Both the position numbers and the translations under genes were made by a program. Positions 386-47,800 of a DNA stretch of 51,403 bases are shown in pieces (positions within the stretch are counted from its first letter, which is position 1; every line of letters begins with the position of its first letter). A model generated the notes under the pieces. It had not been told where the DNA came from. It was given only the letters and a program-made list of their open reading frames with translations, and did not search any database. The stretch is from Aplysia californica (taxonomy: Eukaryota), in contig NW_004797397.1 of NCBI RefSeq assembly GCF_000002075.1, positions 868,071 through 919,473 on the forward strand. Reading direction: 5' to 3'.

Positions 386-969
386 CGGCTGTGTGCGTCT
401 GTGACGTAAACAATTAATACAAAGGAAGACAATCGGAGTCGGTACTTTTGAAGTGAGATATTGATTGTTCGGGATATTGGATTAAAATAGATTAAATATA
501 ACAGTCAACAGGTCATTCATTGTGATTTATTACTCATTATTGTGACTTTACGTACACGGTTTAATAATTTTAACGGTTGTAATTTTTTTAAGTTAATAAA
601 AAAAAGGAATTTTTAAAAGTTGAGAAAAGTATCAAGAAACTCAAGGGAACCAGGCTGACTACAAACATTCGAAAATAAAAATGCCAGGAAGAAGTGTGGA
701 AATACAAGTTGTCATTCCCTTTTTCTGACACGAGGTTCTTACTCTATTTGTATTCCATGTCACCATTACTTTAAACTATCATTATTGTTACTTTTTACAT
801 AAACACAAACATCTACAGGCAACTAAAAGCTTCCAGGGTTTGTGCTAAAGAAAGCATAGTACTGGGGACTTATAGCTTACATGTGTAATAATAAGTATTT
901 GATAACAACGGTTTGAAAACAATACTTCTTCTTTTACTGTGCCTCACTGCAAACGACAGCCGTGAGATA

Positions 970-1340
970 CTGAGGATGGCTGGTCAATGTTTGTCGGTCT
1001 TCTTTTGAGAAATCTGCTCTTTGATGTCTGCTGGTGACTGTTCGATGACCTCCCTTTGATTTCTGCTGGTGACTGTTCTATTACCGCCCTTTGATTTCTG
1101 CTGGTGACTGTTCTATGACATCCTTTTGATTTCTGCTGGTGACTGTTCTATGACCTCCCCTTGATTTCTGCTGGTCACTGCTTAGTGACTGCCCTTGATG
1201 TCTGGTGGTCTCTCCTGGGTGACTGCCCTTTGCTGTCTAGTGGTCAATGTTGGATAACCGCCCTTTGATGCCTACTGGTCATAGCGGGGGAGTCTGTGAT
1301 GTAGACAATGGAGGCCGTGTCTAAGCAAGGGCCGACCATC
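970..1340 (+). repeat. Distal module of 35-bp tandem repeats (diverged variant), upstream of kinase copy 1
   Basis: About 8 units resembling CCCTTTGATTTCTGCTGGTGACTGTTCTATGACCT. It has the same leader (GGCTGGTCA..TGTCGGTCTTCTTT) and trailer (TGTGATGTAGACAATGG..AAGCAAGGGCCGAC) as the other modules. Confidence 0.85.
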
Positions 1341-1724
1341 GTTGATGCTGTTTGTTTGTTTTCTTAATACATCCACGAAAAAACACATCACTGATTGTTG
1401 TAAAATGAACTACATTAAAATAAAATTATGTTATTGTCTATCAATTCACACGGTAACTGGTTCCTTAAACCATATGCTTTCCGTATTAACACACAACAGT
1501 TTCTATAACCACCATTTCAAGGAAAAATAATCAAAAACAACGAAAAAAGTACAGAAAAGACAGCGATACTTAACTTTGCGACAAATAAAGTACAAAGAGG
1601 CTGCAGATATATTGCTTGTTTAAACTTTGTCAAGTTTGTCAAAAGAGTTTTTTGTGCAATAAATCGTATGCAAGAAAACATAACAAGAGTTTCTTTAACT
1701 CTGTTGCACTTTGTACATCATCTG

Positions 1725-2112
1725 TGAGCTTGTGAGAGTGGTTGGTCAGTGTGTGTCGGCCTACTTTGGGGAAACTGCCCTTTTGATCTCTGCTTGTCAT
1801 TGTTGGGTGACAACCCTTTGATGTCTGATGGTCATTCTTGAGTAACTACCCTTTGATGTCTACGGGTCGGTTTTGGGTGACCCCCTTTGATGTTTGATGT
1901 TCCATGTTGGGTGACCGCCCTTTCATGTCTGAAGGTCATTGTAGAGTTACCGCCCTTTGAATTCTGATGGTCCTTGTTGGGTGACCGCCCTTTGATGTCT
2001 GATGGTCATTGTTGGGTGACCGCCCTTTGATGTCCGATGGTCAATGCAGCCGGCGTCTGTGATGTGAACAATGGAAGCTATGTCAAAGCAAGGACCGACA
2101 ATCGGTGTCGGT
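1725..2112 (+). promoter_or_regulatory. Promoter-proximal 35-bp tandem array (TCF/helper/Sox motif-containing), copy 1
   Basis: Unit GTTGGGTGACCGCCCTTTGATGTCTGATGGTCATT. CCTTTGA(T/A) cores at ~1815, 1850, 1884, 1954, 1989 and 2024, with a variant CCTTTCAT at 1919. It ends ~45 bp before the TATA box. The repeat is seen directly; the regulatory role is inference. Confidence 0.65.
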
Positions 2113-2158
2113 GATTTTGAAGACAAATACCCCTCTTTAGGGGGACGCTTGACTCCAC

Positions 2159-2193
2159 TATAAAAGTGAAGGGGTCTGGACATTCCTTCAGTT
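2159..2193 (+). promoter_or_regulatory. Pol II core promoter: TATA box plus initiator, copy 1
   Basis: TATAAAAG at 2159-2166 and TCAGTT at 2188-2193 put the TATA T at -31 relative to the Inr A (2190), the canonical spacing. The same arrangement occurs with TATA at 6645, 13609, 20521, 27313 and 34224. Confidence 0.8.
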
Positions 2194-2278
2194 CAGCATA
2201 TCGCTCTCGCAGTGACAGGTTGGATACGTCTTGTATTTTCCTCTACAGAATTTCTCGACAACTCGGCAGATATCTAGC

Positions 2279-3826
2279 ATGGCTACTCTCACGTTTCCCG
2301 ATGTCACCGTCATTCGTGATGGAGACTTTCTGAACAATTTCAACTTGAAGTTTGTGCGTGTCCTTGCCAAGAAGAAGAATTCGCTAGTTTTGGAAGCTTC
2401 CATGAAGAACGACGACTCCATTCGTAAGGCAATCAAGAAGATCCCTTACCTGGACAGTAAAGGACGACATCGAGGTCTCGAGGACAGCACCGAGGAGTTG
2501 ACCATCATGCACAACGTTCAGCACCCGCACCTCATGAAGATGGACTGGGTGGTCACGTGTGACAGCTTCCTGGCTATCTATATGCCCCTGTGTTCTCAGG
2601 GATCTTTGGATGGATTGCGTCAGTCGCTCCAATGGGACCAAGTGGAACGGGTTTTCGTACAAACCGCCTGTGCCCTGAGATATCTCCACGACCAGCGCTG
2701 TGTACACGGGGACGTGAAGCCAGGCAACATCTTCCTAGACGCCTCCGGCAACGCCATCCTCGGAGACTTTGGTTGTTCTCAGATCTTACCTGATGGAGAA
2801 AACACCGTGAGTCGCTGGAGAGGAACTCTGGGATACCATGGACCTGAGTTTTTCCTTGGTTACAAATTCGACCCTTTTCTGGTAAGTTTTTCTTCTTTAT
2901 TTTTTACGTTTCAGCCTTGATTTGTTGTGGTCATTACACAGGTTAGACGTGCGTTTTTAGCACACAGAAAGGTATCTGCTGTTTGTGTTTATTCTGCCAA
3001 AGAAATATTATTACTTTTATGTCTACGCTTTCACCCTTTTGTCTAATTCATCGGTATTAGGGTGTCATCACTTTTATTACACAATCTATCTATATTATTT
3101 GTAGCATGATATCGTTATCAATTGCTTCAATTTTTATGATGTTTGATATTAATGTAACGTGATTCCGATGTCTAATGTTCCGGTCATTTGTTTTCTTTTT
3201 TTTCAGATGGACGCATACGCACTGGGAGCCACGCTGTGGTCTTTGGTTTTCAGACTCAAACCAGCAGACCTGGATCTACTGGACGTTGTGAGGAATTTTT
3301 CTCTGCCCGAAATGTTCAGGTAAGACAGCTATAATACTGTCATGGTTTACTGAATTGTATTATATATTAGAACGCAGTAGAATGGTTTCCACCATAGACG
3401 TTTTCGTTGTATGCTTTGATGTGAAAGTATAAATTGTATTGAAACGTTGATGAAGTTCTGTGTGGATACGGGGCTTAAATAAACTAAAACATTTTTATAT
3501 CTTTGACAGCATTTTTTTCATATAACTGAAGACTTTTATGCTTCAATTATTATACATTACTAATACCATCTTGCATCGCTTGGTATCCAGTTATATATCA
3601 TGTTATGTGTCATCTTTGAAGCATTTTAAACGCATGTTATCATTTCTTTTTACTAATATTTAATTTGCTAAAACTTTTCTAACCTCAATCTGTGTTTGTT
3701 TTCCTCCACAGAGAAGTTCTGAAAGGACTTTTGCGCGGAGATCCTCAGAAGCGACTGTCTGTTCCCGGCCTCTTGGAGTTCTTGTCTACTCGTGAGAAGC
3801 TCAGGGGAATTATGGAGGGTTTGTGA
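2279..3826 (+). CDS. Divergent Ser/Thr protein kinase, copy 1 (276 aa; exons 2279-2881, 3207-3319, 3712-3826)
   Basis: Exon 1 has KAIKK, alphaC EE, HGDVKPGN, DFG and GTLGYHGPE. GT-AG splicing adds MDAYALGATLW (subdomain IX) and LLRGDPQKRLS (subdomain XI). Splice phases 0 and 2 are consistent; 831 nt including TGA. Confidence 0.92.
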
Positions 3827-3870
3827 GAAACACGGACCTTTGGTAGTCGCAACCTTTTTTCTTTCTATTA

Positions 3871-4723
3871 ACTAATTTGATACTAATTTTTCTTTCCTAC
3901 TAACAGTAATAGCACAACCCAACACCGAGCTCTTTTAAATCTCGCTGACTTAATTTTAATTACAGTTTTGGTACCATTAAAAGCAATAACATATTTTTTT
4001 AAAAGATTAACCCGAACACTAACGAATTAAAAAAAAACCCTTTTTAATTGACACTAGGTATAAAGTAACCAATATTAAGTAAATGTACTCCACAAACTAA
4101 AAAACACTAAATTAAATACACTTCAAAAACTGAAAGGAAAAGAACACTGAGTAATCAAAACTAACTGTAACATATTAACTGATCAAGAATAATTATACAA
4201 CACTAACTGGATAACGCTAAGAAAGACCAGCTAGCCAATGCTAAAACACTAGCTAAGCATCATTACACCTTATCTAACAAACTCAAGTTGTAAATTAAAT
4301 ATTACTAGATTTAAATTTAAGGAAAAACAGACTAAAAAGTTATTCAGAAAAGAGCTTAAGTAATGAATACTAACTTTAACTTAACAATATTAACTAATCA
4401 GCAATAACTATAAAACCATAACTGAATAACGCTAACTATGAAATACCAGCTGGCCAATTCTAAAACACTAGCTAACCATCATTACACCTCATTTAACAAA
4501 CTCAAGTTGTAAAACATTAGCTGTCTCCATCAACCACTGACAAACCTGCGCCCACTACTAACTTATCAATGCCAACAATTAAAGAACACATATTAACCGC
4601 TGATAAACCAAAATCAACCTCTAACTACCCACCATTAACCATTTTAACAACCATTTTAATTACTAACTTACCAACACTAACCACTAACTAACCAACCCTA
4701 ACAACTAATTAACTAACACTAAC
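3871..4723 (+). repeat. A/C-rich low-complexity block with many ACTAAY motifs (presumptive 3' UTR), copy 1
   Basis: 16 ACTAAC/ACTAAT by hand count, plus an internal diverged duplication (~4171-4295 vs ~4386-4515). First downstream AATAAA at 4887, more at 5055 and 5071. Equivalent blocks at 8357-9208, 15317-16169, 22233-23083 and 29020-29873. Confidence 0.8.
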
Positions 4724-5869
4724 TCCCCCAGACGTGAGCGCTCGGTAGCGCCGTCTTTTTAATCAGGCCTCAGTGTACTGTGTACTCTGTGACGGTCCCA
4801 AGCCCGTGAAAACTGAGAGGGAAAAGACGAGTTCTGTGATGAAGAGAACTGTAGCAATGTGGACAAATTAAAAATGCGCCTATGAAAATAAACATTGTTC
4901 CCCCTTTGCCCTCTGCGAAATATAACCCTAAATACTGAGCATACAAGTGCTTCAACTCTTTTTTGACATACTACTCTCCTTTTTCAATTTCCAGTTTTAC
5001 AAATTTGCCCTCATTTTCTTGATCTTTTCAGCTCATTGTTACTTTTATAACAACAATAAATAATTTTAAAAATAAAGAAGACATGCCTTCTAAACAAAAG
5101 TAAAGAGACTACGATAAACAACATTGAGCTGTTTCAGCTTGGGCTGGAGGGTTTACAACAGGTCTTTCGATTTCTTTGTTTGATTCAAAATGTAGCAACC
5201 TTATTCGTGTGTCATATCGCTGAGCATTACCAGAATGTTCTTAGAGTAAATCTAGTATTCTCTGCCGACACAGCCAGTATGTATGTGTGTCTGTATGTGT
5301 GTTTGTTTGTTTGTTTGCTGTATATCCAGAATCCAGACCATTTTGGACACAACTGAAATCGCGCCGGGGAAAAACAGAGTCATTTTCAGTAACTCCACAG
5401 ATAAAATGTCTTGTAAAAGGCGTTACTCACTACAAGATCAGAAGCCCTCACCTCTGCGAACTCTTCCCTTTGCCCTCCTCCCCTCCCCTCCCATTTCATC
5501 AAACCCCTACATTCCCCAAAGGGCACCTTTCCACCCATTCCCCTCCACCCACACTTCTTCTATATGCTTCTACATTCCATTCTCTTCGAATACGTTTTGT
5601 TTACTGAGACTTTTAAAAAAACCTTTAAAAAACCCACCAAAAGAACCAACAACCAAGAGCAACAAAAACGAACACACAAACATAAACAAACGTGATCAGT
5701 CTCCCCATACCCCGTGACCTGAGAAAGAGAAGAAAACAAGGAAGAAATTCCCCAGTAGTCCGTCAGGAAAACCGAACAATGACCAATCCCAACACTCTCA
5801 GTTCAGTCGCCTGTCTCCCCTCGACACCTCTCATTTCCCCACCCCGCACCCCTCCACCCTCTCCCCCCT

Positions 5870-6174: not shown

Positions 6175-6598
6175 TGAGCTTGTGAGAGTGGTTGGTCAGT
6201 GTGTGTCGGCCTACTTTGGGGAAACTGCCCTTTTGATCTCTGCTTGTCATTGTTGGGTGACAACCCTTTGATGTCTGATGGTCATTCTTGAGTAACTACC
6301 CTTTGATGTCTACGGGTCGGTTTTGGGTGACCCTCTTTGATGTTTGATGTTCCATGTTGGGTGACCGCCCTTTCATGTCTGAAGGTCATTGTAGAGTTAC
6401 CGCCCTTTGAATTCTGATGGTCCTTGTTGGGTGACCGCCCTTTGGGGGGGGAGGGGGCATTGTTGGGTGACCGCCCTTTGATGTCTGATGGTCATTGTTG
6501 GGTGACCGCCCTTTGATGTCCGATGGTCAATGCAGCCGGCGTCTGTGATGTGAACAATGGAAGCTATGTCAAAGCAAGGACCGACAATCGGTGTCGGT
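6175..6598 (+). promoter_or_regulatory. Promoter-proximal 35-bp tandem array, copy 2
   Basis: As in copy 1, with one extra unit partly replaced by a G-run. TATA at 6645. Confidence 0.6.
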
Positions 6599-8312: not shown

Positions 8313-11249
8313 GAAACACGGACCTTTGGTAGTCGCAACCTTTTTTCTTTCTATTAACTAATTTGATACTAATTTTTCTTTCCTACTAACAGTAATAGCA
8401 CAACCCAACACCGAGCTCTTTTAAATCTCGCTGACTTAATTTTAATTACAGTTTTGGTACCATTAAAAGCAATAACATATTTTTTTTAAAGATTAACCCG
8501 AACACTAACAAATTAAAAAAAAACCTTTTTAATTGACACTAGGTATAAAGTAACCAATATTAAGTAAATGTACTCCACAAACTAAAAAACACTAAATTAA
8601 ATACACTTCAAAAACTGATTAGGAAAAGAACACTGAGTAATCAAAACTAACTGTAACATATTAACTGATCAAGAATAATTATACAACACTAACTGGATTA
8701 CGCTAAGAAAGACCAGCTAGCCAATGCCAAAACACTAGCTAAGCATCATTACACCTTATCTAACAAAGTCAAGTTGTAAATTAAATATTACTAGATTTAA
8801 ATTTAAGGAAAAACAGACTAAAAAGTTATTCAGAAAAGAGCTTAAGTAATGAATACTAACTTTAACTTAACAATATTAACTAATCAGCAATAACTATAAA
8901 ACCATAACTGAATAACGCTAACTATGAAATACCAGCTGGCCAATTCTAAAACACTAGCTAACCATCATTACACCTCATTTAACAAACTCAAGTTGTAAAA
9001 CATTAGCTGTCTCCATCAACCACTGACAAACTGCGCCCACTACTAACTTATCAATGCCAACAATTAAAGAACACATATTAACCGCTGATAAACCAAAATC
9101 AACCTCTAACTACCCACCATTAACCATTTTAACAACCATTTTAATTACTAACTTACCAACACTAACCACTAACTAACCAACCCTAACAACTAATTAACTA
9201 ACACTAACTCCCCCAGACGTGAGCGCTCGGTAGCGCCGTCTTTTTAATCAGGCCTCAGTGTACTGTGTACTCTGTGACGGTCCCAAGCCCGTGAAAACTG
9301 AGAGGGAAAAGACGAGTTCTGTGATGAAGAGAACTGTAGCAATGTGGACAAATTAAAAATGCGCCTATGAAAATAAACATTGTTCCCCCTTTGCCCTCTG
9401 CGAAATATAACCCTAAATACTGAGCATACAAGTGCTTCAACTCTTTTTTGACATACTACTACTAAAAAACACTAAATTAAATACACTTCAAAAACTGAAA
9501 GGAAAAGAACACTGAGTAATCAAAACTAACTGTAACATATTAACTTTTTCAATTTCCAGTTTTACAAATTTGCCCTCATTTTCTTGATCTTTTCAGCTCA
9601 TTGTTACTTTTATAACAACAATAAATAATTTTAAAAATAAAGAAGACATGCCTTCTAAACAAAAGTAAAGAGACTACGATAAACAACATTGAGCTGTTTC
9701 AGCTTGGGCTGGAGGGTTTACAACAGGTCTTTCGATTTCTTTGTTTGATTCAAAATGTAGCAACCTTATTCGTGTGTCATATCGCTGAGCATTACCAGAA
9801 TGTTCTTAGAGTAAATCTAGTATTCTCTGCCGACACAGCCAGTATGTATGTGTGTCTGTATGTGTGTTTGTTTGTTTGTTTGCTGTATATCCAGAATCCA
9901 GACCATTTTGGACACAACTGAAATCGCGCCGGGGAAAAACAGAGTCATTTTCAGTAACTCCACAGATAAAATGTCTTGTAAAAGGCGTTACTCACTACAA
10001 GATCAGAAGCCCTCACCTCTGCGAACTCTTCCCTTTGCCCTCCTCCCCTCCCATCCCATTTCATCAAACCCCTACATTCCCCAAAGGGCACCTTTCCACC
10101 CATTCCCCTCCACCCACACTTCTTCTATATGCTTCTACATTCCATTCTCTTCGAATACGTTTTGTTTACTGAGACTTTTAAAAAAACCTTTAAAAAACCC
10201 ACCAAAAGAACCAACAACCAAGAGCAACAAAAACGAACACACAAACATAAACAAACGTGATCAGTGTCCCCATACCCCGTGACCTGAGAAAGAGAAGAAA
10301 ACAAGGAAGAAATTCCCCAGTAGTCCGTCAGGAAAACCGAACAATGACCAATCCCAACACTCTCAGTTCAGTCGCCTGTCTCCCCTCGACACCTCTCATT
10401 TCCCCACCCCGCACCCCTCCACCCTCTCCCCCCCTTCCAATCCGTTCTCTGTTCTTCATTACTCCAACCCCTCCCATCCCTCACCTGTTTTTAATATTTG
10501 AATTATTTTTTTTAAAACAAAACAAACCCAACGTGGTCAGTCTCCCCATTGATCTGAGAGTGAGAAGAAAACAAGGATTATCAAAGAAAGATGAACACAG
10601 TTAACATTTCTTTGTCGAAGGCCAGAGAACCCAAACAATGGCCAATCATAACACTCTCAGTTCAGTCGCTCGTCTTGGGATCTTACAATGGGTGAATAAA
10701 AGGCGTGGCTTAAGATATGAGGGCCGTCCTATTCCACGTTTGTAGCCACTCGTGATTTAACTTACTGTGTCAAAAAAATGTCATTAAAGGCACATGGGTT
10801 ATTTCTGCCAACGAAGTACAGGATGTAGTTACTTTTACAATGTGTCCCCGTGGTTTTATGCACTTCGCATAATTTAGCCAAATTTGATCATTTTTTTGCG
10901 TAATTTCTAATTTTTTTCCCTTTTTTGCTCTTTGTATAAATTAACAGAATCGCATAATTTCACATTTTTGGGTTCAGTTTGCATAATTACACATTTTTTC
11001 TTTCATAAAAAGACGGGGCAGTACAAAGTATATGAAATGTGTTTTGAAAAGTGAAGCATTAATAAATATATTTTTACTTTAATTTTTTTAATTCCTATTA
11101 TGAGGTATTGGGAGTGGGGGGGGGGGGGGGGCTATGTGGTGGTTAGGTTTCTCTAACTAACCACGTTGTCACAAGGCTTTATTTACAACAAAAAAATAGT
11201 ACAATTCTGTTCCCGATCTTCCTTCAGCATCTATTCCCGCGAAGAAGCA

Positions 11250-13562
11250 AGTGAGAAAGGCTGGTCACTGTGTGTCGGTCTTCTTTTGGAGAACAAGCCT
11301 TTGATGTCTACTGGTCACTATTGGGTGACCGCCCTTTGATGACTTCTGGCCATTGCAGCGTCGTCTTTGATGTAGACAATGGAAGCCACGTAAAAGCAAT
11401 GTGGGGGGGGGGGGGGTGAATCTTTGTTGATGTTATTGAAGACAAAAAAAAAACACTCTTAGATAATACGGTGGAAACAAGTAATAAAACCACGACATAA
11501 TATTGTCAGCCCAATAATATCATCTAAACATTATTGTTTTCTAAAAGCACCGATTAAAAGAACACACAAAATGAAAGCAGGTACAAGCCTTTGGGACAAA
11601 GAAAGTACAGTGGGCCCCGCTCACATGTTGCTCCATTAAGCTTTTTCAAATTTGTCAAAATAATTTATTTGTGGTATAAATATTGTTAGAAGGAAAATAA
11701 AATTGACATGAGCTTTCTTTAACTGTGAGCTTGTGAGAGTGGCTGGTCAGTGTGTGTCCGCCTTCTTTTGGGAAACCGCCCTTTGATCTCTGCTCGTCAT
11801 TGTTAGGTGACCGCCCTTTGATGTCTACTGGTCATTTGCCAATGTTGAGTGACCGTCCTTTGATGTCTAGTGGTCACTGTGGTGATGTCTCTGGTGTAGG
11901 CAATTAAAGCCGTGTCAAAACGTGCCAACGGTCACAAACATTAATTTTCTGTTTTATTTACATAATAAAATTTAACACGTTATCTTTTGATAGTATTTAT
12001 TACGTTATCCAATATTTAGCCTTCATTCAAGTTTACTAACGTCATTTTACAAACATCAGTATGTCTGTTTCTATTAAGGGTTTATTTATTTAAATCATTG
12101 CCATGAGGCCTCGTTTACTACTAAATACTATACTACTTTGGTTCACGTACTTGCTTCAGCATCCATTCCGGCGAAGAAGCAGGTGAGAAAGGCTGGTCAC
12201 TGTGTGTCGGTCTTCTTTGGGGAAGCCGCTCTTTGACATGTGCTAGTCGAGGCTGGGTGACCGCCCTTTGGTGTCTGGTAGTTGTTATTGTGTGACTCCA
12301 CTTTGATGTCTACTGGTCACAGTTGGGTGACCACCGTTTACTGACAGGTGGTCACAGACGGATAACCGCCCTTAGTTTCTGATGGTCATTGTTGAGTGAC
12401 TGCCTTTTAATATCTGCTGATCTCTACCGGGTGACTGTCCTTTGATGACTGGTGGTCTCTACTAGGTGACTGCCTTTGTTGTCTGGGGGGGGGGGGGGTC
12501 AATGTTGGATAACCTCCCTTTGATGCCTACTGGTCATAGCGGCGGAGTCTGTGATGTAGACAATTGATGCCGTGTCAAAGCAAGAGCCGACAATCATTAT
12601 TGATGTTTATGACAACATCCCCCTTCTCCCACCCCCAAATAAATATTTTGTTTTAAAATGAAAGAAAACAGAAAAAAAGACAAAAACAAACCAAAAACAA
12701 ACAAAACAAAAACAGCAAAACAAACCCCCCCCCCCCCCCCACTGAATATACACTAGTAAAAAATTAAATATGGAGGTTCATACTATTCTCAACTAATTCA
12801 CCCGTCAAAGAGCTGTCTAACTTATTAAAATTTACTTATCGTGTTTACATATAACTATTTTTATGAGTAAAGTAAAGTAAAGTTGTTCCCGAATCCGATC
12901 TGGACATTGGAGATTGCCATGTTAGTGAGACAACTTACAAGAATTTCGGCCTTTTCTATGAGAACCGATTGAAAACAAAGAAAAACAAAACAAATAGAAA
13001 ACAAATCAAAGAAGGAAAGACTTGACTGAGAGCATTTTACTTTGAGGGAAAAAAGGTTGCTTGTTCATACTTTTTCAAATTTGTCAAAATAATTCTTCTT
13101 TTTTTTCGACATATCGTTTGCAGGAAAACGTGACAAGAGTTATCTTTAACTCTGTTGCACTTTGTACATCATCTGTGAGCTTGTGAGAGTGGCTGGTCAG
13201 TGTGTGTCGGCCTTCTTTGGGGAAGCCGCCCTTTGATGTCAGACGGTCATTGTTGGATCACCGCCCTTTGATGTCTGATGGTCATTCTTGAGTAACTACC
13301 CTTTGATGTCTACGGGTCGGTTTTGGGTGACCCTCTTTGATGTTTGATGTTCCATGTTGGGTGACTGCCCTTTCATGTCTGAAGGTCATTGTAGAGTTAC
13401 CGCCCTTTGAATTCTGATGGTCCTTGTTGGGTGACCGCCCTTTGATGTCTGATGGTCATTGTTGGGTGACCGCCCTTTGATGTCCGATGGTCAATGCAGC
13501 CGGCGTCTGTGATGTGAACAATGGAAGCTATGTCAAAGCAAGGACCGACAATCGGTGTCGGT
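11250..13562 (+). promoter_or_regulatory. Four modules of 35-bp repeats upstream of copy 3 (~11250-11400, 11725-11925, 12180-12595, 13173-13562)
   Basis: Each module is a shared leader, then 3 to ~10 degenerate 35-bp units, then a shared trailer. About 16 same-strand CTTTGA(T/A) cores by hand count. TATA at 13609. Confidence 0.65.
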
Positions 13563-18132: not shown

Positions 18133-20474
18133 AGTGAGAAAGGCTGGTCACTGTGTGTCGGTCTTCTTTTGGAGAACAAGCCTTTGATGTCTACTGGTCA
18201 CTATTGGGTGACCGCCCTTTGATGACTTCTGGCCATTGCAGCGTCGTCTTTGATGTAGACAATGGAAGCCACGTAAAAGCAATGTGGGGGGGGGGGGGTG
18301 AATCTTTGTTGATGTTATTGAAGACAAAAAAACAAACACTCTTAGATAATACGGTGGAAACAAGTAATAAAACCACGACATAATATTGTCAGCCCAATAA
18401 TATCATCTAAACATTATTGTTTTCTAAAAGCACCGATTAAAAGAACACACAAAATGAAAGCAGGTACAAGCCTTTGGGACAAAGAAAGTACAGTGGGCCC
18501 CGCTCACATGTTGCTCCATTAAGCTTTTTCAAATTTGTCAAAATAATTTATTTGTGGTATAAATATTGTTAGAAGGAAAATAAAATTGACATGAGCTTTC
18601 TTTAACTGTGAGCTTGTGAGAGTGGCTGGTCAGTGTGTGTCCGCATTCTTTTGGGAAACCGCCCTTTGATCTCTGCTCGTCATTGTTAGGTGACCGCCCT
18701 TTGATGTCTACTGGTCATTTGCCAATGTTGAGTGACCGTCCTTTGATGTCTAGTGGTCACTGTGGTGATGTCTCTGGTGTAGGCAATTAAAGCCGTGTCA
18801 AAACGTGCCAACGGTCACAAACATTAATTTTCTGTTTTATTTACATAATAAAATTTAACACGTTATCTTTTGATAGTATTTATTACGTTATCCAATATTT
18901 AGCCTTCATTCAAGTTTACTAACGTCATTTTACAAACATCAGTATGTCTGTTTCTATTAAGGGTACATTTATTTAAATCATTGTCATGAGGCCTCGTTTA
19001 CTACTAAATACTATACTACTTTGGTTCACGTACTTGCTTCAGCATCCATTCCGGCGAAGAAGCAGGTGAGAAAGGCTGGTCACTGTGTGTCGGTCTTCTT
19101 TGGGGAAGCCGCTCTTTGACATGTGCTAGTCGAGGCTGGCTGGGTGACCGCCCTTTGGTGTCTGGTAGTTGTTATTGTGTGACTCCACTTTGATGTCTAC
19201 TGGTCACAGTTGGGTGACCACCGTTTACTGACAGGTGGTCACAGACGGATAACCGCCCTTAGTTTCTGATGGTCATTGTTGAGTGACTGCCTTTTAATAT
19301 CTGCTGATCTCTACCGGGTGACTGTCCTTTGATGACTGGTGGTCTCTACTAGGTGACTGCCTTTGTTGTCTGGGGGGGGGGTCAATGTTGGATAACCTCC
19401 CTTTGATGCCTACTGGTCATAGCGGCGGAGTCTGTGATGTAGACAATTGATGCCGTGTCAAAGCAAGAGCCGACAATCATTATTGATGTTTATGACAACA
19501 TCCCCCTTCTCCCACCCCCAAATAAATATTTTGTTTTAAAATGAAAGAAAACAGAAAAAATGACAAAAACAAACCAAAAACAAACAAAACAAAAACAGCA
19601 AAACAACCCCCCCCCCCACTGAATATACACTAGTAAAAAATTAAATATGGAGGTTCATACTATTCTCAACTAATTCACCCGTCAAAGAGCTGTCTAACTT
19701 ATTAAAATTTACTTACCGTGTTTACATATAACTATTTTTATGAGTAAAGTAAAGTAAAGTTGTTCCCGAATCCGATCTGGACATTGGAGATTGCCATGTT
19801 AGTGAGACAACTTACAAGAATTTCGGCCTTTTCTATGAGAACCGATTGAAAACAAAGAAAAACAAAACAAATAGAAAACAAATCAAAGAAGGAAAGACTT
19901 GACTGAGAGCATTTTACTTTGAGGGAAAAAAGGTTGCTTGTTCATACTTTTTCAAATTTGTCAAAATAATTCTTCTTTTTTTTCGACATATCGTTTGCAG
20001 GAAAACGTGACAAGAGTTATCTTTAACTCTGTTGCACTTTGTACATCATCTGTGAGCTTGTGAGAGTGGCTGGTCAGTGTGTGTCGGCCTTCTTTGGGGA
20101 AGCCGCCCTTTGATGTCAGACGGTCATTGTTGGATCACCGCCCTTTGATGTCTGATGGTCATTCTTGAGTAACTACCCTTTGATGTCTACGGGTCGGTTT
20201 TGGGTGACCCTCTTTGATGTTTGATGTTCCATGTTGGGTGACCGCCCTTTCATGTCTGAAGGTCATTGTAGAGTTACCGCCCTTTGAATTCTGATGGTCC
20301 TTGTTGGGTGACCGCCCTTTGATGTCTGATGGTCATTGTTGGGTGACCGCCCTTTGATGTCTGATGGTCATTGTTGGGTGACCGCCCTTTGATGTCCGAT
20401 GGTCAATGCAGCCGGCGTCTGTGATGTGAACAATGGAAGCTATGTCAAAGCAAGGACCGACAATCGGTGTCGGT
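18133..20474 (+). promoter_or_regulatory. Four modules of 35-bp repeats upstream of copy 4
   Basis: Homologous to 11250-13562. The proximal module has one extra unit. TATA at 20521. Confidence 0.65.
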
Positions 20475-24927: not shown

Positions 24928-27266
24928 AGTGAGAAAGGCTGGTCACTGTGTGTCGGTCTTCTTTTGGAGAACAAGCCTTTGATGTCTACTGGTCACTATT
25001 GGGTGACCGCCCTTTGATGACTTCTGGCCATTGCAGCGTCGTCTTTGATGTAGACAATGGAAGCCACGTAAAAGCAATGTGGGGGGTGGGGGAATCTTTG
25101 TTGATGTTATTGAAGACAAAAAAAAAACACTCTTAGATAATACGGTGGAAACAAGTAATAAAACCACGACATAATATTGTCAGCCCAATAATATCATCTA
25201 AACATTATTGTTTTCTAAAAGCACCGATTAAAAGAACACACAAAATGAAAGCAGGTACAAGCCTTTGGGACAAAGTACAGTGGGCCCCGCTCACATGTTG
25301 CTCCATTAAGCTTTTTCAAATTTGTCAAAATAATGTATTTGTGGTATAAATATTGTTAGAAGGAAAATAAAATTGACATGAGCTTTCTTTAACTGTGAGC
25401 TTGTGAGAGTGGCTGGTCAGTGTGTGTCCGCCTTCTTTTGGGAAACCGCCCTTTGATCTCTGCTCGTCATTGTTAGGTGACCGCCCTTTGATGTCTACTG
25501 GTCATTTGCCAATGTTGAGTGACCGTCCTTTGATGTCTAGTGGTCACTGTGGTGATGTCTCTGGTGTAGGCAATTAAAGCCGTGTCAAAACGTGCCAACG
25601 GTCACAAACATTAATTTTCTGTTTTATTTACATAATAAAATTTAACACGTTATCTTTTGATAGTATTTATTACGTTATCCAATATTTAGCCTTCATTCAA
25701 GTTTACTAACGTCATTTTACAAACATCAGTATGTCTGTTTCTATTAAGGGTACATTTATTTAAATCATTGTCATGAGGCCTCGTTTACTACTAAATACTA
25801 TACTACTTTGGTTCACGTACTTGCTTCAGCATCCATTGCGGCGAAGAAGCAGGTGAGAAAGGCTGGTCACTGTGTGTCGGTCTTCTTTGGGGAAGCCGCT
25901 CTTTGACATGTGCTAGTCGAGGCTGGGTGACCGCCCTTTGGTGTCTGGTAGTTGTTATTGTGTGACTCCACTTTGATGTCTACTGGTCACAGTTGGGTGA
26001 CCACCGTTTACTGACAGGTGGTCACAGACGGATAACCGCCCTTAGTTTCTGATGGTCATTGTTGAGTGACTGCCTTTTAATATCTGCTGATCTCTACCGG
26101 GTGACTGTCCTTTGATGACTGGTGGTCTCTACTAGGTGACTGCCTTTGTTGTCTGGGGGGGGGGGGTCAATGTTGGATAACCTCCCTTTGATGCCTACTG
26201 GTCATAGCGGCGGAGTCTGTGATGTAGACAATGGATGCCGTGTCAAAGCAAGAGCCGACAATCATTATTGATGTTTATGACAACATCCCCCTTCTCCCAC
26301 CCCCAAATAAATATTTTGTTTTAAAATGAAAGAAAACAGAAAAAATGACAAAAACAAACCAAAAACAAACAAAACAAAAACAGCAAAACAACCCCCCCCC
26401 CCCCCCCCCACTGAATATACACTAGTAAAAAATTAAATATGGAGGTTCATACTATTCTCAACTAATTCACCCGTCAAAGAGCTGTCTAACTTATTAAAAT
26501 TTACTTATCGTGTTTACATATAACTATTTTTATGAGTAAAGTAAAGTAAAGTTGTTCCCGAATCCGATCTGGACATTGGAGATTGCCATGTTAGTGAGAC
26601 AACTTACAAGAATTTCGGCCTTTTCTATGAGAACCGATTGAAAACAAAGAAAAACAAAACAAATAGAAAACAAATCAAAGAAGGAAAGACTTGACTGAGA
26701 GCATTTTACTTTGAGGGAAAAAAGGTTGCTTGTTCATACTTTTTCAAATTTGTCAAAATAATTCTTCTTTTTTTTCGACATATCGTTTGCAGGAAAACGT
26801 GACAAGAGTTATCTTTAACTCTGTTGCACTTTGTACATCATCTGTGAGCTTGTGAGAGTGGCTGGTCAGTGTGTGTCGGCCTTCTTTGGGGAAGCCGCCC
26901 TTTGATGTCAGACGGTCATTGTTGGATCACCGCCCTTTGATGTCTGATGGTCATTCTTGAGTAACTACCCTTTGATGTCTACGGGTCGGTTTTGGGTGAC
27001 CCTCTTTGATGTTTGATGTTCCATGTTGGGTGACTGCCCTTTCATGTCTGAAGGTCATTGTAGAGTTACCGCCCTTTGAATTCTGATGGTCCTTGTTGGG
27101 TGACCGCCCTTTGATGTCTGATGGTCATTGTTGGGTGACCGCCCTTTGATGTCTGATGGTCATTGTTGGGTGACCGCCCTTTGATGTCCGATGGTCAATG
27201 CAGCCGGCGTCTGTGATGTGAACAATGGAAGCTATGTCAAAGCAAGGACCGACAATCGGTGTCGGT
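24928..27266 (+). promoter_or_regulatory. Four modules of 35-bp repeats upstream of copy 5
   Basis: Homologous to 11250-13562. TATA at 27313. Confidence 0.65.
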
Positions 27267-31831: not shown

Positions 31832-34177
31832 AGTGAGAAAGGCTGGTCACTGTGTGTCGGTCTTCTTTTGGAGAACAAGCCTTTGATGTCTACTGGTCAC
31901 TATTGGGTGACCGCCCTTTGATGACTTCTGGCCATTGCAGCGTCGTCTTTGATGTAGACAATGGAAGCCACGTAAAAGCAATGTGGGGGGGGGGGGGGTG
32001 AATCTTTGTTGATGTTATTGAAGACAAAAAAAAAACACTCTTAGATAATACGGTGGAAACAAGTAATAAAACCACGACATAATATTGTCAGCCCAATAAT
32101 ATCATCTAAACATTATTGTTTTCTAAAAGCACCGATTAAAAGAACACACAAAATGAAAGCAGGTACAAGCCTTTGGGACAAAGAAAGTACAGTGGGCCCC
32201 GCTCACATGTTGCTCCATTAAGCTTTTTCAAATTTGTCAAAATAATTTATTTGTGGTATAAATATTGTTAGAAGGAAAATAAAATTGACATGAGCTTTCT
32301 TTAACTGTGAGCTTGTGAGAGTGGCTGGTCAGTGTGTGTCCGCATTCTTTTGGGAAACCGCCCTTTGATCTCTGCTCGTCATTGTTAGGTGACCGCCCTT
32401 TGATGTCTACTGGTCATTTGCCAATGTTGAGTGACCGTCCTTTGATGTCTAGTGGTCACTGTGGTGATGTCTCTGGTGTAGGCAATTAAAGCCGTGTCAA
32501 AACGTGCCAACGGTCACAAACATTAATTTTCTGTTTTATTTACATAATAAAATTTAACACGTTATCTTTTGATAGTATTTATTACGTTATCCAATATTTA
32601 GCCTTCATTCAAGTTTACTAACGTCATTTTACAAACATCAGTATGTCTGTTTCTATTAAGGGTACATTTATTTAAATCATTGTCATGAGGCCTCGTTTAC
32701 TACTAAATACTATACTACTTTGGTTCACGTACTTGCTTCAGCATCCATTCCGGCGAAGAAGCAGGTGAGAAAGGCTGGTCACTGTGTGTCGGTCTTCTTT
32801 GGGGAAGCCGCTCTTTGACATGTGCTAGTCGAGGCTGGGTGACCGCCCTTTGGTGTCTGGTAGTTGTTATTGTGTGACTCCACTTTGATGTCTACTGGTC
32901 ACAGTTGGGTGACCACCGTTTACTGACAGGTGGTCACAGACGGATAACCGCCCTTAGTTTCTGATGGTCATTGTTGAGTGACTGCCTTTTAATATCTGCT
33001 GATCTCTACCGGGTGACTGTCCTTTGATGACTGGTGGTCTCTACTAGGTGACTGCCTTTGTTGTCTGGGGGGGGGGGGGTCAATGTTGGATAACCTCCCT
33101 TTGATGCCTACTGGTCATAGCGGCGGAGTCTGTGATGTAGACAATTGATGCCGTGTCAAAGCAAGAGCCGACAATCATTATTGATGTTTATGACAACATC
33201 CCCCTTCTCCCACCCCCAAATAAATATTTTGTTTTAAAATGAAAGAAAACAGAAAAAATGACAAAAACAAACCAAAAACAAACAAAACAAAAACAGCAAA
33301 ACAACCCCCCCCCCCCCCCCACTGAATATACACTAGTAAAAAATTAAATATGGAGGTTCATACTATTCTCAACTAATTCACCCGTCAAAGAGCTGTCTAA
33401 CTTATTAAAATTTACTTATCGTGTTTACATATAACTATTTTTATGAGTAAAGTAAAGTAAAGTTGTTCCCGAATCCGATCTGGACATTGGAGATTGCCAT
33501 GTTAGTGAGACAACTTACAAGAATTTCGGCCTTTTCTATGAGAACCGATTGAAAACAAAGAAAAACAAAACAAATAGAAAACAAATCAAAGAAGGAAAGA
33601 CTTGACTGAGAGCATTTTACTTTGAGGGAAAAAAGGTTGCTTGTTCATACTTTTTCAAATTTGTCAAAATAATTCTTCTTTTTTTTCGACATATCGTTTG
33701 CAGGAAAACGTGACAAGAGTTATCTTTAACTCTGTTGCACTTTGTACATCATCTGTGAGCTTGTGAGAGTGGCTGGTCAGTGTGTGTCGGCCTTCTTTGG
33801 GGAAGCCGCCCTTTGATGTCAGACGGTCATTGTTGGATCACCGCCCTTTGATGTCTGATGGTCATTCTTGAGTAACTACCCTTTGATGTCTACGGGTCGG
33901 TTTTGGGTGACCCTCTTTGATGTTTGATGTTCCATGTTGGGTGACCGCCCTTTCATGTCTGAAGGTCATTGTAGAGTTACCGCCCTTTGAATTCTGATGG
34001 TCCTTGTTGGGTGACCGCCCTTTGATGTCTGATGGTCATTGTTGGGTGACCGCCCTTTGATGTCTGATGGTCATTGTTGGGTGACCGCCCTTTGATGTCC
34101 GATGGTCAATGCAGCCGGCGTCTGTGATGTGAACAATGGAAGCTATGTCAAAGCAAGGACCGACAATCGGTGTCGGT
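31832..34177 (+). promoter_or_regulatory. Four modules of 35-bp repeats upstream of copy 6
   Basis: Homologous to 11250-13562. TATA at 34224. Confidence 0.65.
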
Positions 34178-44800: not shown

Positions 44801-47800
44801 CCCAAAACGAATGTTCAACTTACCGTTTTACCCTTCACCCATTCTGTAGCAAGAGAACTAGATGCAATGGCAGAACCACAACCAAATGTCTTGAACTTTG
44901 CATCAACGATCTTCCCATCATCATCAACCTTGATCTGAAGAAAGCAAGACAAGACATTAACAATCATAACATGCAACTGTACAGGTTGGGAAAAATGTAA
45001 GCAGGAAGATTAATTCCAGTTGATCAAACATAAGCCGCATGGCTTAGATGGTAAGAATAAAATATAATTCAGAACTTGTTAAGTCTCATCGGATAAATGA
45101 GAAAAGAACATCCTCATACACATACATACATGGTATATTTCTTGAAGAATATAATATAAAAACAAATAGTAGCAAAAGACAGGCGTCAAGTGTAGACATA
45201 TAATCATATCCATGCAACTTTAACACTGTCACTTTATACAAACATGAAGTTCAAGCTATTATATTTTAACCCTTAACTTACAACCTCGCATATTTTTCTC
45301 ACAAGTTCTCGATCCCTCAGGCTCAGTCCCAGAAGCTACCCTCACAGGAGCCTGACAACCCCAAACCCAGCTGGATATTTTTACTGTAACCAAATTGCCT
45401 CTGAAAAATACATTATATGTTATCTTCTAAAGATTCAAATAAACGCAGTAGAGAACTTTTAAAAAAATGTTTGCGAAAAATAATTACACACACAATCTTC
45501 AGTGTTGGCTGGGCCTAAAGAGGCAAAGGAGTTTAAAGTCTAGTAAGCACACTATGTGGGGGCTAAAACTAGCCCGGTGCTGGTAAGGGTTAATGGTAGT
45601 TTATGAGAAGTTTGCGCAACGAAAGCATATTTCGCCACTGCACAAAAGGAGAAACAAAGAAGTAGAATGAGCAGGCCACACCAGAGTGTGTGTACTGACA
45701 ACCTGCAACATCCCCCCTCCCCCCCCCCCCCCCCTTGAAAAAAAACCCCAATGCTAACCTGCAACTTCATCACATCTCCACACGCAGGGGCCCCCACCAG
45801 TCCTGTGCCAACTTTTTTGTCCTCTTTGTCTAAGGACCCAACGTTTCTCGGGTTTTCATAATGGTCAATCACCTGAAAAAAAGAAAGTTTTTTATTAACT
45901 ATAAAATTCCACAACATATATTCTACTAACTAGTGTTATTGGTTCATTCTTCCACAAAAGTTGCTAATACACAGCATCCTGACTATCATTTCAGTCAATT
46001 TGACAACTATTATAAACTCTACAGAAGGTAAAATTATCAAACTCAACCCCTTCCCCCCAAAAAACAAAACAACAACAAAATCCCAGGATTATTTCACAGT
46101 GAAAGATGGTGACCTTCCAATCAGCTGGTAGCGATCTTGAGCTTCTTTGCCATAGCTAACTTTTAATGTTTCTTGTGCATCATTCCAGATTTTATTCTAG
46201 TGCAAAAATTCAGCTCATTGCATCATCTTTATCCAGGGGGAGCTGTCTTGAGTTCATAACAAATTATAAGGACAGACATTCTACAACAGCAGGAGGGTGC
46301 CACTTTTCAAACTGCAGCAACTAGTTGCAGTGCCCCCCCCCACCCCATGTATGTGCCCCATTCTGGTACACTTGATCACTGCCATGCCTTCTTTTTTTAA
46401 AATTCAAGGACAAGTCCAAGAGCGCGGACTGACTCTTTAATGACCTATTTAGATATAAGGACGAGTCACCCTGACTGTAACAGCAGCATCAGTATCAGTG
46501 CCGCAGGTTATCCTCTGTAGAATGATTAGCAGCATGATGACATTTTTGCAGGTTGGGGTTAGTTGTAACTTAGTTGTCTGGTCTACTTGTCCAACTAGAT
46601 GTTTTAGCATTTGACTGAGTAGCCACATCACCTTACACATTTAGTGGCAAAAGTCAAAATATGCAGTTGGAATAGGCCAAACAGAGATATTCTAAATAAT
46701 CGTGCATCTGTCAAACTGTGCCAGAAAGTGTTTGCAAATAGGTGCATTTTGTAGCTTTATCTTCACTGAGCATGGAACTTTTTGAATTTTAAAAATCCAT
46801 CAGTAAACAAAAAAGTTACGGATTTTTTAATCAATTAATTTCTGGTACACTTTTATATAATGAAAAACCCCCAAAATATGGGACGTTCTTTGGTGAGTTT
46901 TGAGACAATATTCGTCATAACTCACTCATTTCTCAGAGTATTTAAAAGAAACTTGGCAACCCAGTACATTTTCTAGTGCAGAATCTAGTCCTGCTTTCAG
47001 ATTTTTCATAGCTATCCTATTTTTTGAGTTATGAAGACGTTTATAGGTAAAAATGTGGCGGTTTTCGGTGCGTTTTGAAACAATATTTGTCATAGCTCGC
47101 CTATTTCTTGGAATATGTAAATGAAACTTGGCAGTCTAGTACATTTTTAAATGCAGAATCTAGTCATGCAGTCAGATTTTTAATATCTGTCATACTTTTT
47201 GAGTTGTAAAGACATTAACAGGTAAAAAAGTGGCGTTCTTTACAGATTTACAAAGATTATCAGTCATATGTTCTCCCAAAGTCATGATATTTGAATGAAA
47301 CTTGGCAACATAAAAGGTTCTTCCTTGCCAAGCTATGCTCTGGATCAATTTGTCACAAAAATGTAAGTAGAGAGCTGGATTTATTAGTCTAATTAATCCA
47401 GTTCTGTACTAGTAAAAGCATGCATACTTTGTTATAGAAAATAAGATCGTCTCTGTGTATATTCCATTGTTCGACAGTGCCCTATTGTGTGGTAGATTAA
47501 GATGCGTTCAGAATATAGTTTACAAGTCATGGGAATATTTCGCATGTGTAGGCTACAACTCATACAATAAATGTAACATATTTACACCCCCCCCCCCCTC
47601 TCTCTCTCTCTCACGCTCGCGCACACACACACACACACATGCACGCGCGCGCACTCACGCACGCACGCACGCCTGAACGATAACAATGTATAAACGGGAC
47701 TATCTTCCCAGACTGGACTAAATAAGTACCATACTCTTTAATAACAATCTTAATGCCTCACTTTTACAAACTGAGCACACAGGACGAGTCCAAGTGTGTG

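Follow-up and report, generated by a model that had tools for sequence, protein, structure and literature searches.

The kinase cassettes and their core promoter

The window analysed here, a 51,403-nucleotide stretch of the Aplysia californica genome (C127:868071-919473), contains six kinase cassettes that are arranged head to tail and are 99-100% identical to one another. The spacing between neighbouring cassettes is 4.5 kb once, with an N gap between the two copies, and 6.8-6.9 kb thereafter. Each cassette carries a kinase gene of three exons encoding 276 amino acids. In copy 1, exon 1 (2279-2881, plus strand) comprises 201 codons and encodes a Pkinase domain (E=1e-25); exon 2 (3207-3319, plus strand) is placed by its AG/GT boundaries and the reading frame, and exon 3 (3712-3826, plus strand), which ends in a stop codon at 3824-3826, is placed by splice signals. 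The total length predicted from these exons equals that of the annotated homologue P0001. Exons were kept separate in the sequence searches, and exon 1 served as the sole query; the closest protein matches are A. californica entries annotated as ‘serine/threonine-protein kinase ppk34-like’. The assembly holds ~17 copies of the cassette. The kinase open reading frames are intact in nearly every copy, and one copy located just upstream of the window (C127:859201-859647) contains an in-frame TGA.

The core promoter of copy 1 consists of a TATA box, TATAAAAG (2159-2166, plus strand), which is conserved among paralogs, and an Inr-like TCAGTT motif (2188-2193, plus strand) whose A lies 31 bp past the first T of the TATA box and marks the putative start site. 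The TATAAAAG boxes of the six copies start at 2159, 6645, 13609, 20521, 27313, and 34224. This core promoter, together with a 5'-UTR block, is common even to paralogs of only 50-55% protein identity, and distant paralogs also keep the CAGTT motif. Between the repeat array described below and the TATA box lies a unique promoter segment (2055-2158, plus strand) that shows 93-96% identity among paralogs and 85% identity to L029, a 993-bp contig assembled from an independent public run. Within this flank (2066-2100), all paralogs carry two invariant HMG-type cores in the sense opposite to the array motif: AACAATGG, which is SOX-like and reads ACAAAGG in L029, and GTCAAAGCA. In distant paralogs, the sequence upstream of the TATA box has a reverse CCAAT box (GATTGGC) instead.

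Several other features occur in the window. The spacer of each cassette contains an ATG-initiated open reading frame of 144 amino acids with no Pfam match (5283-5717, and again at 9848, 16728, 23643, and 30433). Downstream of the kinase array, an exon on the minus strand (45552-45917) matches NifU_N, an ISCU-type iron-sulfur scaffold domain (E=2.6e-13). At the array edge, positions 300-400 of the minus strand appear tRNA-like by eye, with acceptor/T-arm-like segments; ARAGORN makes no call there and finds no tRNA genes, and this stretch is probably a fragment of a tRNA-derived SINE. A search of Rfam over the whole window returned no family at gathering score.

A 35-bp repeat precedes every promoter

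Each of the six TATA boxes has a tandem array of 35-bp units upstream of it, with ~105 bp between array and box. In copy 1 the array (1776-2054, plus strand) comprises eight units with five intact CTTTGWWS motifs and four RCCGCC motifs, all on the plus strand; Tandem Repeats Finder (TRF) reports a period of 35 and 7.6 copies at 1777-2043. The TATA box follows 105 bp beyond the end of this array and the Inr-like motif ~136 bp beyond it. The other proximal arrays, also on the plus strand, are located at 6226-6540 in copy 2, where a G-run interrupts one unit, 13226-13504 in copy 3, 20103-20416 in copy 4, which has 8.7 units and seven Wnt response element motifs, 26895-27208 in copy 5, and 33806-34119 in copy 6. 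Copy 3 was delineated by TRF, a unit scan, and motif counts, and copies 5 and 6 by TRF and motif counts. TRF places these five arrays at 6227-6529, 13226-13493, 20103-20405, 26895-27197, and 33806-34108, with 7.7-8.7 copies each. The first-pass annotation had described a unit repeated about 8-9 times beside every TATA box, and both the consensus unit and the TRF copy numbers (7.6-8.7 at the six boxes) bear this description out. TRF also detects a higher-order period of three units, or 104-105 bp, within the arrays. Across the kinase subfamily, unit number ranges from 3.7 to 8.7. Head-to-tail 35-bp units, present in variable number near the putative start site, are the hallmarks of a promoter minisatellite.

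The spacers contain additional copies. Each 6.9-kb spacer has three extra, more diverged arrays, each followed by a copy of the post-array flank, and the spacer is therefore built from duplicated promoter modules that lack a gene. All of these modules lie on the plus strand. Distal module 3 (11294-11363) has two units plus flank and distal module 2 (11776-11887) three units plus flank, whereas distal module 1 (12226-12547) has ~9 diverged units followed by a copy of the post-array flank; the modules recur ~6.9 kb further on in each later unit. Upstream of copy 1, a comparable gene-less module consists of a diverged array and a flank copy (1014-1292; TRF 1019-1281), as is evident when 1258-1330 is compared with 2020-2100. 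Homopolymer runs of G or C, 10-16 nt in length, interrupt or flank the arrays at 6436-6470, 11405-11418, 12485-12498, 11117-11132, and 12727-12741, and one such run takes the place of the middle of a unit. These runs may be genuine or may be assembly or sequencing artefacts.

The units are strongly biased toward one strand. An ungapped scan of the window at a threshold of at least 20 of 35 matches to the consensus yields 113 units on the plus strand and one on the minus strand, in agreement with the earlier statement that the CTTTGA core always lies on the same strand. CTTTGA itself occurs 108 times on the plus strand of the window and 28 times on the minus strand. One 6.9-kb unit contains 20 CTTTGWWS motifs on the plus strand and one on the minus strand, which is close to the ~16 cores per unit counted by hand in the first-pass annotation. 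Each proximal array has 5-7 intact CTTTGWWS motifs, all in the sense of the gene, and 4-6 helper-like RCCGCC motifs. Because tandem duplication and co-duplication with the gene account for both the uniform strand and the density of sites, these counts amount to one observation.

Two other accounts of the unit itself were considered and rejected. A second CWTTGWW motif (the SOX-like CATTGTT at positions 23-29, in the variable block of the unit) had suggested that each unit is made up of two sub-units of 17-18 bp; self-similarity at shifts of 17 and 18 is 15/35, no better than at shifts of 14 and 21. A nuclear-receptor-type inverted repeat (TGGTCA, 8 nt, TGACC) was discarded because the A of its first arm and the CC of its second are among the less conserved columns.

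The repeat is confined to one kinase subfamily

We searched the entire 927-Mb assembly of 4332 contigs for the repeat. With up to three mismatches allowed, the 35-mer has 62 matches in the genome, all on C127, C436, C2028, and C688. A 19-nt core with up to one mismatch has 166 matches, and the 100 of these 166 that were listed lie on C127, C436, and C2028 apart from about two chance matches. Reversed-pattern controls gave 0 matches for the 35-mer and 5 for the 19-nt core. The contigs that bear the repeat are exactly those with kinase paralogs of more than 85% protein identity, and gene and array share one strand in every case. The presence, position, and orientation of the array are fixed in all subfamily genes on C127, C436, C2028, and C688.

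Neither arrays nor unit-like sequences occur at the paralogs of 50-55% identity (C344, C804, C934, C170, C464, C1289, C1032, and C343), which have the same TATA/Inr promoter. An ancestral single-copy proto-unit was also sought in the promoters of distant paralogs and was not found; the best alignments, at 17-21 of 35 positions, are noise. Outside the assembly, L029 shares 80-84% identity with every subfamily member and is a near-identical match to none of them. Its sequence opens inside a 35-bp array and then runs through the flank, TATA box, UTR, and exon 1 known from the genome copies.

Searches of IMG/VR gave no match to the repeat, and 41 metagenome contigs have one match each and no arrays, which is the level expected by chance. 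A dispersed transposable element or satellite is rejected since both the 35-mer and the 19-nt core are confined to kinase-subfamily loci, and a viral or foreign origin is rejected given the IMG/VR result and the single chance matches in metagenomes. Because it is confined to these loci, the repeat is an innovation of one kinase subfamily and not a transposon, satellite, or foreign DNA. A scaffold from a TARA ocean metagenome (L030) encodes a 248-aa homologue of the kinase family at 50% identity, presumably from a planktonic mollusc, and has no 35-bp array in the 184 bp of the contig that are available upstream of the gene. A literature search for such a kinase array in Aplysia returned nothing relevant.

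A TCF-type motif and a helper-like site in the unit

Positions 6-13 of the consensus unit match the Wnt response element consensus CTTTGWWS (PMC4267635) at 8/8 positions, and positions 5-15 match the fly HMG consensus SCTTTGWWSWW (PMC4154663) at 10/11. The TCF HMG site proposed in the first-pass annotation is thereby confirmed as a motif, and it is intact in 67 of 138 unique units (49%). An ACCGCC directly precedes it in the consensus and matches RCCGCC at 6/6 positions, so that the reported RCCGCC-type motif abutting the HMG site is also present. In a random 35-mer of this base composition, the chance of CTTTGWWS is 1.1%, that of the helper is 1.1%, and that of both is 1e-4. This joint chance is small for a factor specified in advance and unremarkable for a motif picked post hoc in very many windows. 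Multimerised TCF sites beside a minimal promoter suffice as reporters in vertebrate cells, as in TOPflash. HMG-only reporters are inactive in flies (PMC4154663).

These matches raise the possibility of a bipartite TCF site, in which the HMG domain would bind CCTTTGATG and the C-clamp would bind ACCGCC, making the array a natural TOPflash and the kinases direct Wnt/β-catenin targets. Invertebrate TCFs carry a C-clamp (PMC3896468), and the exact matches of the consensus unit to both motifs, their numbers per proximal array, and the low joint chance in a random unit are all in keeping with this proposal. The helper consensus is GCCGCCR in flies and RCCGCC in humans (PMC4267635, PMC4154663). However, the Aplysia motif matches the fly helper at only 5/7 positions, and the first G, which is A here, was required in fly mutagenesis (PMC4154663). 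The arrangement of the two motifs also argues against bipartite recognition. The helper-like motif lies upstream of the HMG site on the same strand and abuts or overlaps it by 1-2 nt, an RW0-type geometry. Fly TCF binds best to AK6, with the helper 6 bp upstream on the opposite strand (IC50 5.1 nM), and binds FF0, with the helper immediately downstream on the same strand, at 9.4 nM, whereas RW0 was the worst of eight helper-containing oligonucleotides at 189 nM (PMC4154663). The Aplysia unit has neither of the two favoured geometries. In Kc cells and imaginal discs, RW0 was also no more active than HMG-only reporters (PMC4154663), although it drove expression in larval epidermis and corpora allata, and fly TCF bound better to an HMG site accompanied by a helper, whatever its orientation, than to a lone HMG site (PMC4154663).

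The evolution of the helper-like motif offers a second line of evidence. RCCGCC is intact in 56 of 138 unique units, and its retention is independent of that of the HMG motif (30/37/26/45, Fisher p=0.39). CCGCC holds the CpG of the unit, and the change seen most often in it, present in 35 of 136 unique units, is C to T at position 2, the decay expected of a CpG; as described below, it is also the fastest-changing block. The earlier reading of ACCGCC as a C-clamp helper is not supported by these results: the block changes fastest, is not co-retained with the HMG motif, and sits in the weakest fly geometry. The bipartite reading fails two testable features, geometry and helper conservation, and it leaves unaccounted for a second conserved block, TCTGnTGGTC. 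The HMG and C-clamp exons of an Aplysia TCF gene were not located in the assembly; a candidate β-catenin-binding exon is found on C428 (22 bits), the rest of which is half N. Overall, we regard direct regulation through a bipartite TCF site as unlikely.

Conservation across the unit

To assess conservation within the unit, 262 units (136 of them unique) were pooled from the window and nine paralogous upstream regions; motif retention was scored on 138 unique units. Events were counted by two methods because shared ancestry inflates column frequencies: independent contrasts on 57 disjoint nearest-neighbour pairs, with 123 differences, and a Fitch count on a FastTree phylogeny of unique units, with 381 changes. 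By frequency, the highest columns are T7-T9 (0.94-0.99), and CTTTGAT averages ~0.91. T14 and T16 reach 0.88 and 0.91, and the block T19-C23 0.83-0.93. CCGCC is at 0.67-0.87, and positions 18 and 24-32 range over 0.35-0.83. Taken in larger stretches, positions 5-23 are at 0.82-0.99 except for 13, 17, and 18, and positions 24-32 at 0.46-0.83. By frequency, the conservation of the second block, TCTGnTGGTC, roughly equals that of the HMG motif, and TCF leaves this block unexplained.

The two event counts differ in strength. Across all sites, the contrasts do not depart significantly from uniformity (chi-square p=0.15); the HMG core is mildly low at 2.7 differences per site versus 3.5 (p=0.26), and CCGCC has 4.6. 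By Fitch count, CTTTGAT has 7.0 changes per site where the mean is 10.9 (p=3e-4), with minima of 2 and 3 changes at T8 and T9, and CCGCC has 15, the highest of any block (p=0.004 for the excess). A11 of the HMG motif is not slow. T sites are slow throughout the unit, with 7.1 changes by Fitch count versus 12-14 for A, C, and G, so the signal of a conserved TTT is partly mutational. Among T sites only, the Fitch count gives 4.25 changes within the core and 8.3 outside it.

Taken together, these counts give weak to moderate support for protection of TTTG, and clear evidence that CCGCC is unprotected. The claim that CTTTGA(T/A) is the best-preserved part of the unit holds for the frequencies of T7-T9 and for the Fitch count, but the second block is nearly its equal and the contrasts do not separate the sites. 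Likewise, of the two conservation peaks anticipated at CTTTGAT and CCGCC, the former is recovered as the slowest segment by Fitch count, whereas the latter is the fastest-changing.

Array turnover and the case for neutrality

Exon 1 evolves with a dN/dS of ~0.5 (0.29-0.55) and a dS of 0.07-0.10 among genome paralogs and 0.31 to L029. One very recent pair, in comparisons among the window, L029, and L031-L033, has a dN/dS of 1.7 on 14 differences. Because the open reading frames are intact and dN/dS is ~0.5, the kinase genes appear to be still under some selection. Differences between paralogs amount to 3-7% in the unique promoter from array end to ATG, 2-9% in exons, 5-44% in introns, and 9-27% in the arrays, where unit number also changes. 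Compared with L029, the last two units and the promoter show 81-85% identity (83-85% for the window sequence), a level similar to the 84% of the coding sequence and unlike the 57% at the start of the intron. On these figures, the core promoter is clearly constrained. The arrays, judged against the same proxies, change at a rate near or above the neutral one and yet are never lost, a combination that fits either redundant sites in a homotypic cluster or a neutral, self-perpetuating minisatellite.

The latter explanation deserves serious weight. The array may be a neutral hitch-hiker that arose once by slippage or unequal exchange, has been kept by unequal exchange and gene conversion, and has been copied passively with the gene, in which case the TCF motif would be coincidental. 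Tandem duplication alone yields the strand bias and the site density, and the three-unit period of 104-105 bp points to unequal exchange. Several rate measures are likewise consistent with neutrality: the contrasts lack significant site heterogeneity, array divergence is at or above the synonymous rate with 3.7-8.7 units per array, and the conservation of TTT coincides with slow T sites generally. Because ~1% of random 35-mers carry CTTTGWWS, several minisatellites with such a motif are expected in a 927-Mb genome, and the gene is silent in the RNA runs read. Three observations are harder to reconcile with passive copying. Firstly, every copy retains the array at the same place, even the one at dS 0.31, whose intron is only 57% alignable. 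Secondly, the Fitch count for CTTTGAT is low, and the T sites of its core change about half as often as those elsewhere. Finally, across old array types, the unit divides into two contiguous blocks that are conserved and one block that is variable. On balance, we consider a neutral origin and maintenance a substantial possibility, though one that falls clearly short of even.

Expression and copy number

In three polyA RNA-seq runs, with 1.3-1.5 Gb read from each, only 1-2 reads per run fall on positions 900-5400, and the gene is silent there. In a public run, X1, whose kind is a guess (‘probably DNA’), word depth, which is not a copy number, is ~2300-3100 and is even over the array, exons, introns, and 3' spacer (1690-5278), with no splice joints; the flank specific to copy 1 (1353-1654) has a depth of 0-3.6. 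In six runs of 1-2 million letters each, ~80% of the words of 1700-3900 are present. If these are assumed to be random genomic libraries, the cassette would make up ~1-2% of reads and would exist in thousands of copies that are collapsed in the assembly. The true copy number of the cassette may far exceed the ~17 of the assembly, or these runs may be targeted libraries. This hint of copies beyond the assembly count merits a direct measurement of copy number.

The same data bear on a structural or recombinogenic role, in which the arrays, instead of being enhancers, would mainly provide sites of unequal exchange through which the 6.9-kb cassette expands and is homogenised, or would nucleate the silencing of a very high-copy array. 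Six copies of 99-100% identity at 6.8-6.9 kb spacing, four array-plus-flank modules in each spacer, the contrast in X1 depth between cassette and copy-1-specific flank, the high word content of the small runs (thousands of copies if random genomic DNA), and the absence of polyA RNA from the gene in the runs read would all accord with such a role. However, the depth does not translate into a copy number, the assembly holds merely ~17 copies, and the open reading frames are intact with a dN/dS of ~0.5. We consider this role improbable.

A bolder combination of these elements can also be envisaged. The locus may be a young cassette equipped with a self-made ‘TOPflash’—5-7 TCF/HMG sites per promoter and ~20 per 6.9-kb unit—that has possibly been amplified to thousands of copies and is switched on by Wnt/β-catenin or another HMG-box pathway in an unsampled stage or tissue. 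This scenario is a long shot; if true, it would illustrate how tandem duplication can create a regulatory element that gene amplification then spreads.

A multimerised upstream element as the favoured interpretation

The interpretation we favour, tentatively and at a little under an even chance, is that the repeat is a lineage-specific promoter minisatellite working as a multimerised array of binding sites, with an HMG-box factor as the top candidate and a second specificity alongside it. According to this model, a short upstream segment would have been tandemly duplicated in the ancestor of one Aplysia kinase subfamily, and the repeat would later have been copied with the gene and, in addition, three times per unit as gene-less promoter modules. 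Its most likely role would be that of a multimerised element upstream of the TATA/Inr core promoter, at about -140 to -420. The array would present 5-7 same-sense copies of a conserved block of ~19 bp, consisting of CCCTTTGAT followed by GTCTGnTGGTC, and could thereby attract multiple molecules of a sequence-specific factor and determine when the otherwise silent kinase cassette turns on. For the first half-block, the leading candidate would be a sequence-specific HMG-box protein, of the TCF type by its exact match to CCTTTGATG.

The model builds on an anatomy, a family-private distribution, a retention in all copies, and a motif match that are observed directly; that any factor binds the array, and that its binding matters, is what we infer. 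Retention of the array in all copies including L029, block-wise conservation within the unit, and the motif match together favour a functional array. Counted against it are the contrasts (p=0.15), the slow T sites, array divergence that equals or exceeds synonymous divergence, the existence of paralogs without arrays, the retention of an intact CTTTGWWS in only 49% of unique units, the inactivity of HMG-only reporters in flies, and RNA silence.

Both the functional and the neutral readings carry broader implications. If functional, the array would be a natural one-step enhancer made by duplication of a single site and carried along by an amplifying gene family, and it would be readily testable, as paralogs vary from ~4 to 9 units. 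If neutral, it is a caution: any minisatellite with a motif-bearing unit gives dense, uniformly oriented, perfect motifs, and these are one observation.

Comparison with known systems

Three groups of known systems resemble the Aplysia locus in different respects. In the tandem rRNA genes of Xenopus, the spacer contains 60/81-bp enhancer repeats and duplicated spacer promoters and is bound by the HMG-box factor UBF. Like the kinase cassettes, these genes lie head to tail, with spacers made of short repeats and gene-less promoter modules in the orientation of the gene. Unlike the Xenopus spacer, the Aplysia locus has a Pol II TATA/Inr promoter and a protein-coding kinase gene, shares no sequence relationship with it, and contains what is a candidate enhancer only.

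Promoter-proximal variable number tandem repeats (VNTRs) that modulate transcription include the human INS 5' VNTR, the MAOA upstream VNTR, and the HRAS1 minisatellite. In these cases too, a Pol II start is preceded, at a distance of a few hundred bases, by a tandem repeat of tens of base pairs, with a unit number that varies between copies and transcription-factor-like motifs in the units. The Aplysia array differs in being part of a multi-copy gene cassette and in being repeated four times per spacer.

Wnt-responsive modules with HMG-helper pairs, such as fly nkd-IntE and human SP5, and the TOPflash reporter share with the Aplysia array multiple CCTTTGAT(S) sites near a TATA promoter and a GC-rich RCCGCC within a few bases of each HMG motif. 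The Aplysia sites differ in being exact-period copies of one 35-bp unit that did not evolve independently, and they are known here from sequence alone. Their helper-like motif also follows the disfavoured geometry (upstream, same strand, abutting) and decays fastest. The array belongs to a familiar class, that of the promoter minisatellite or homotypic site cluster.
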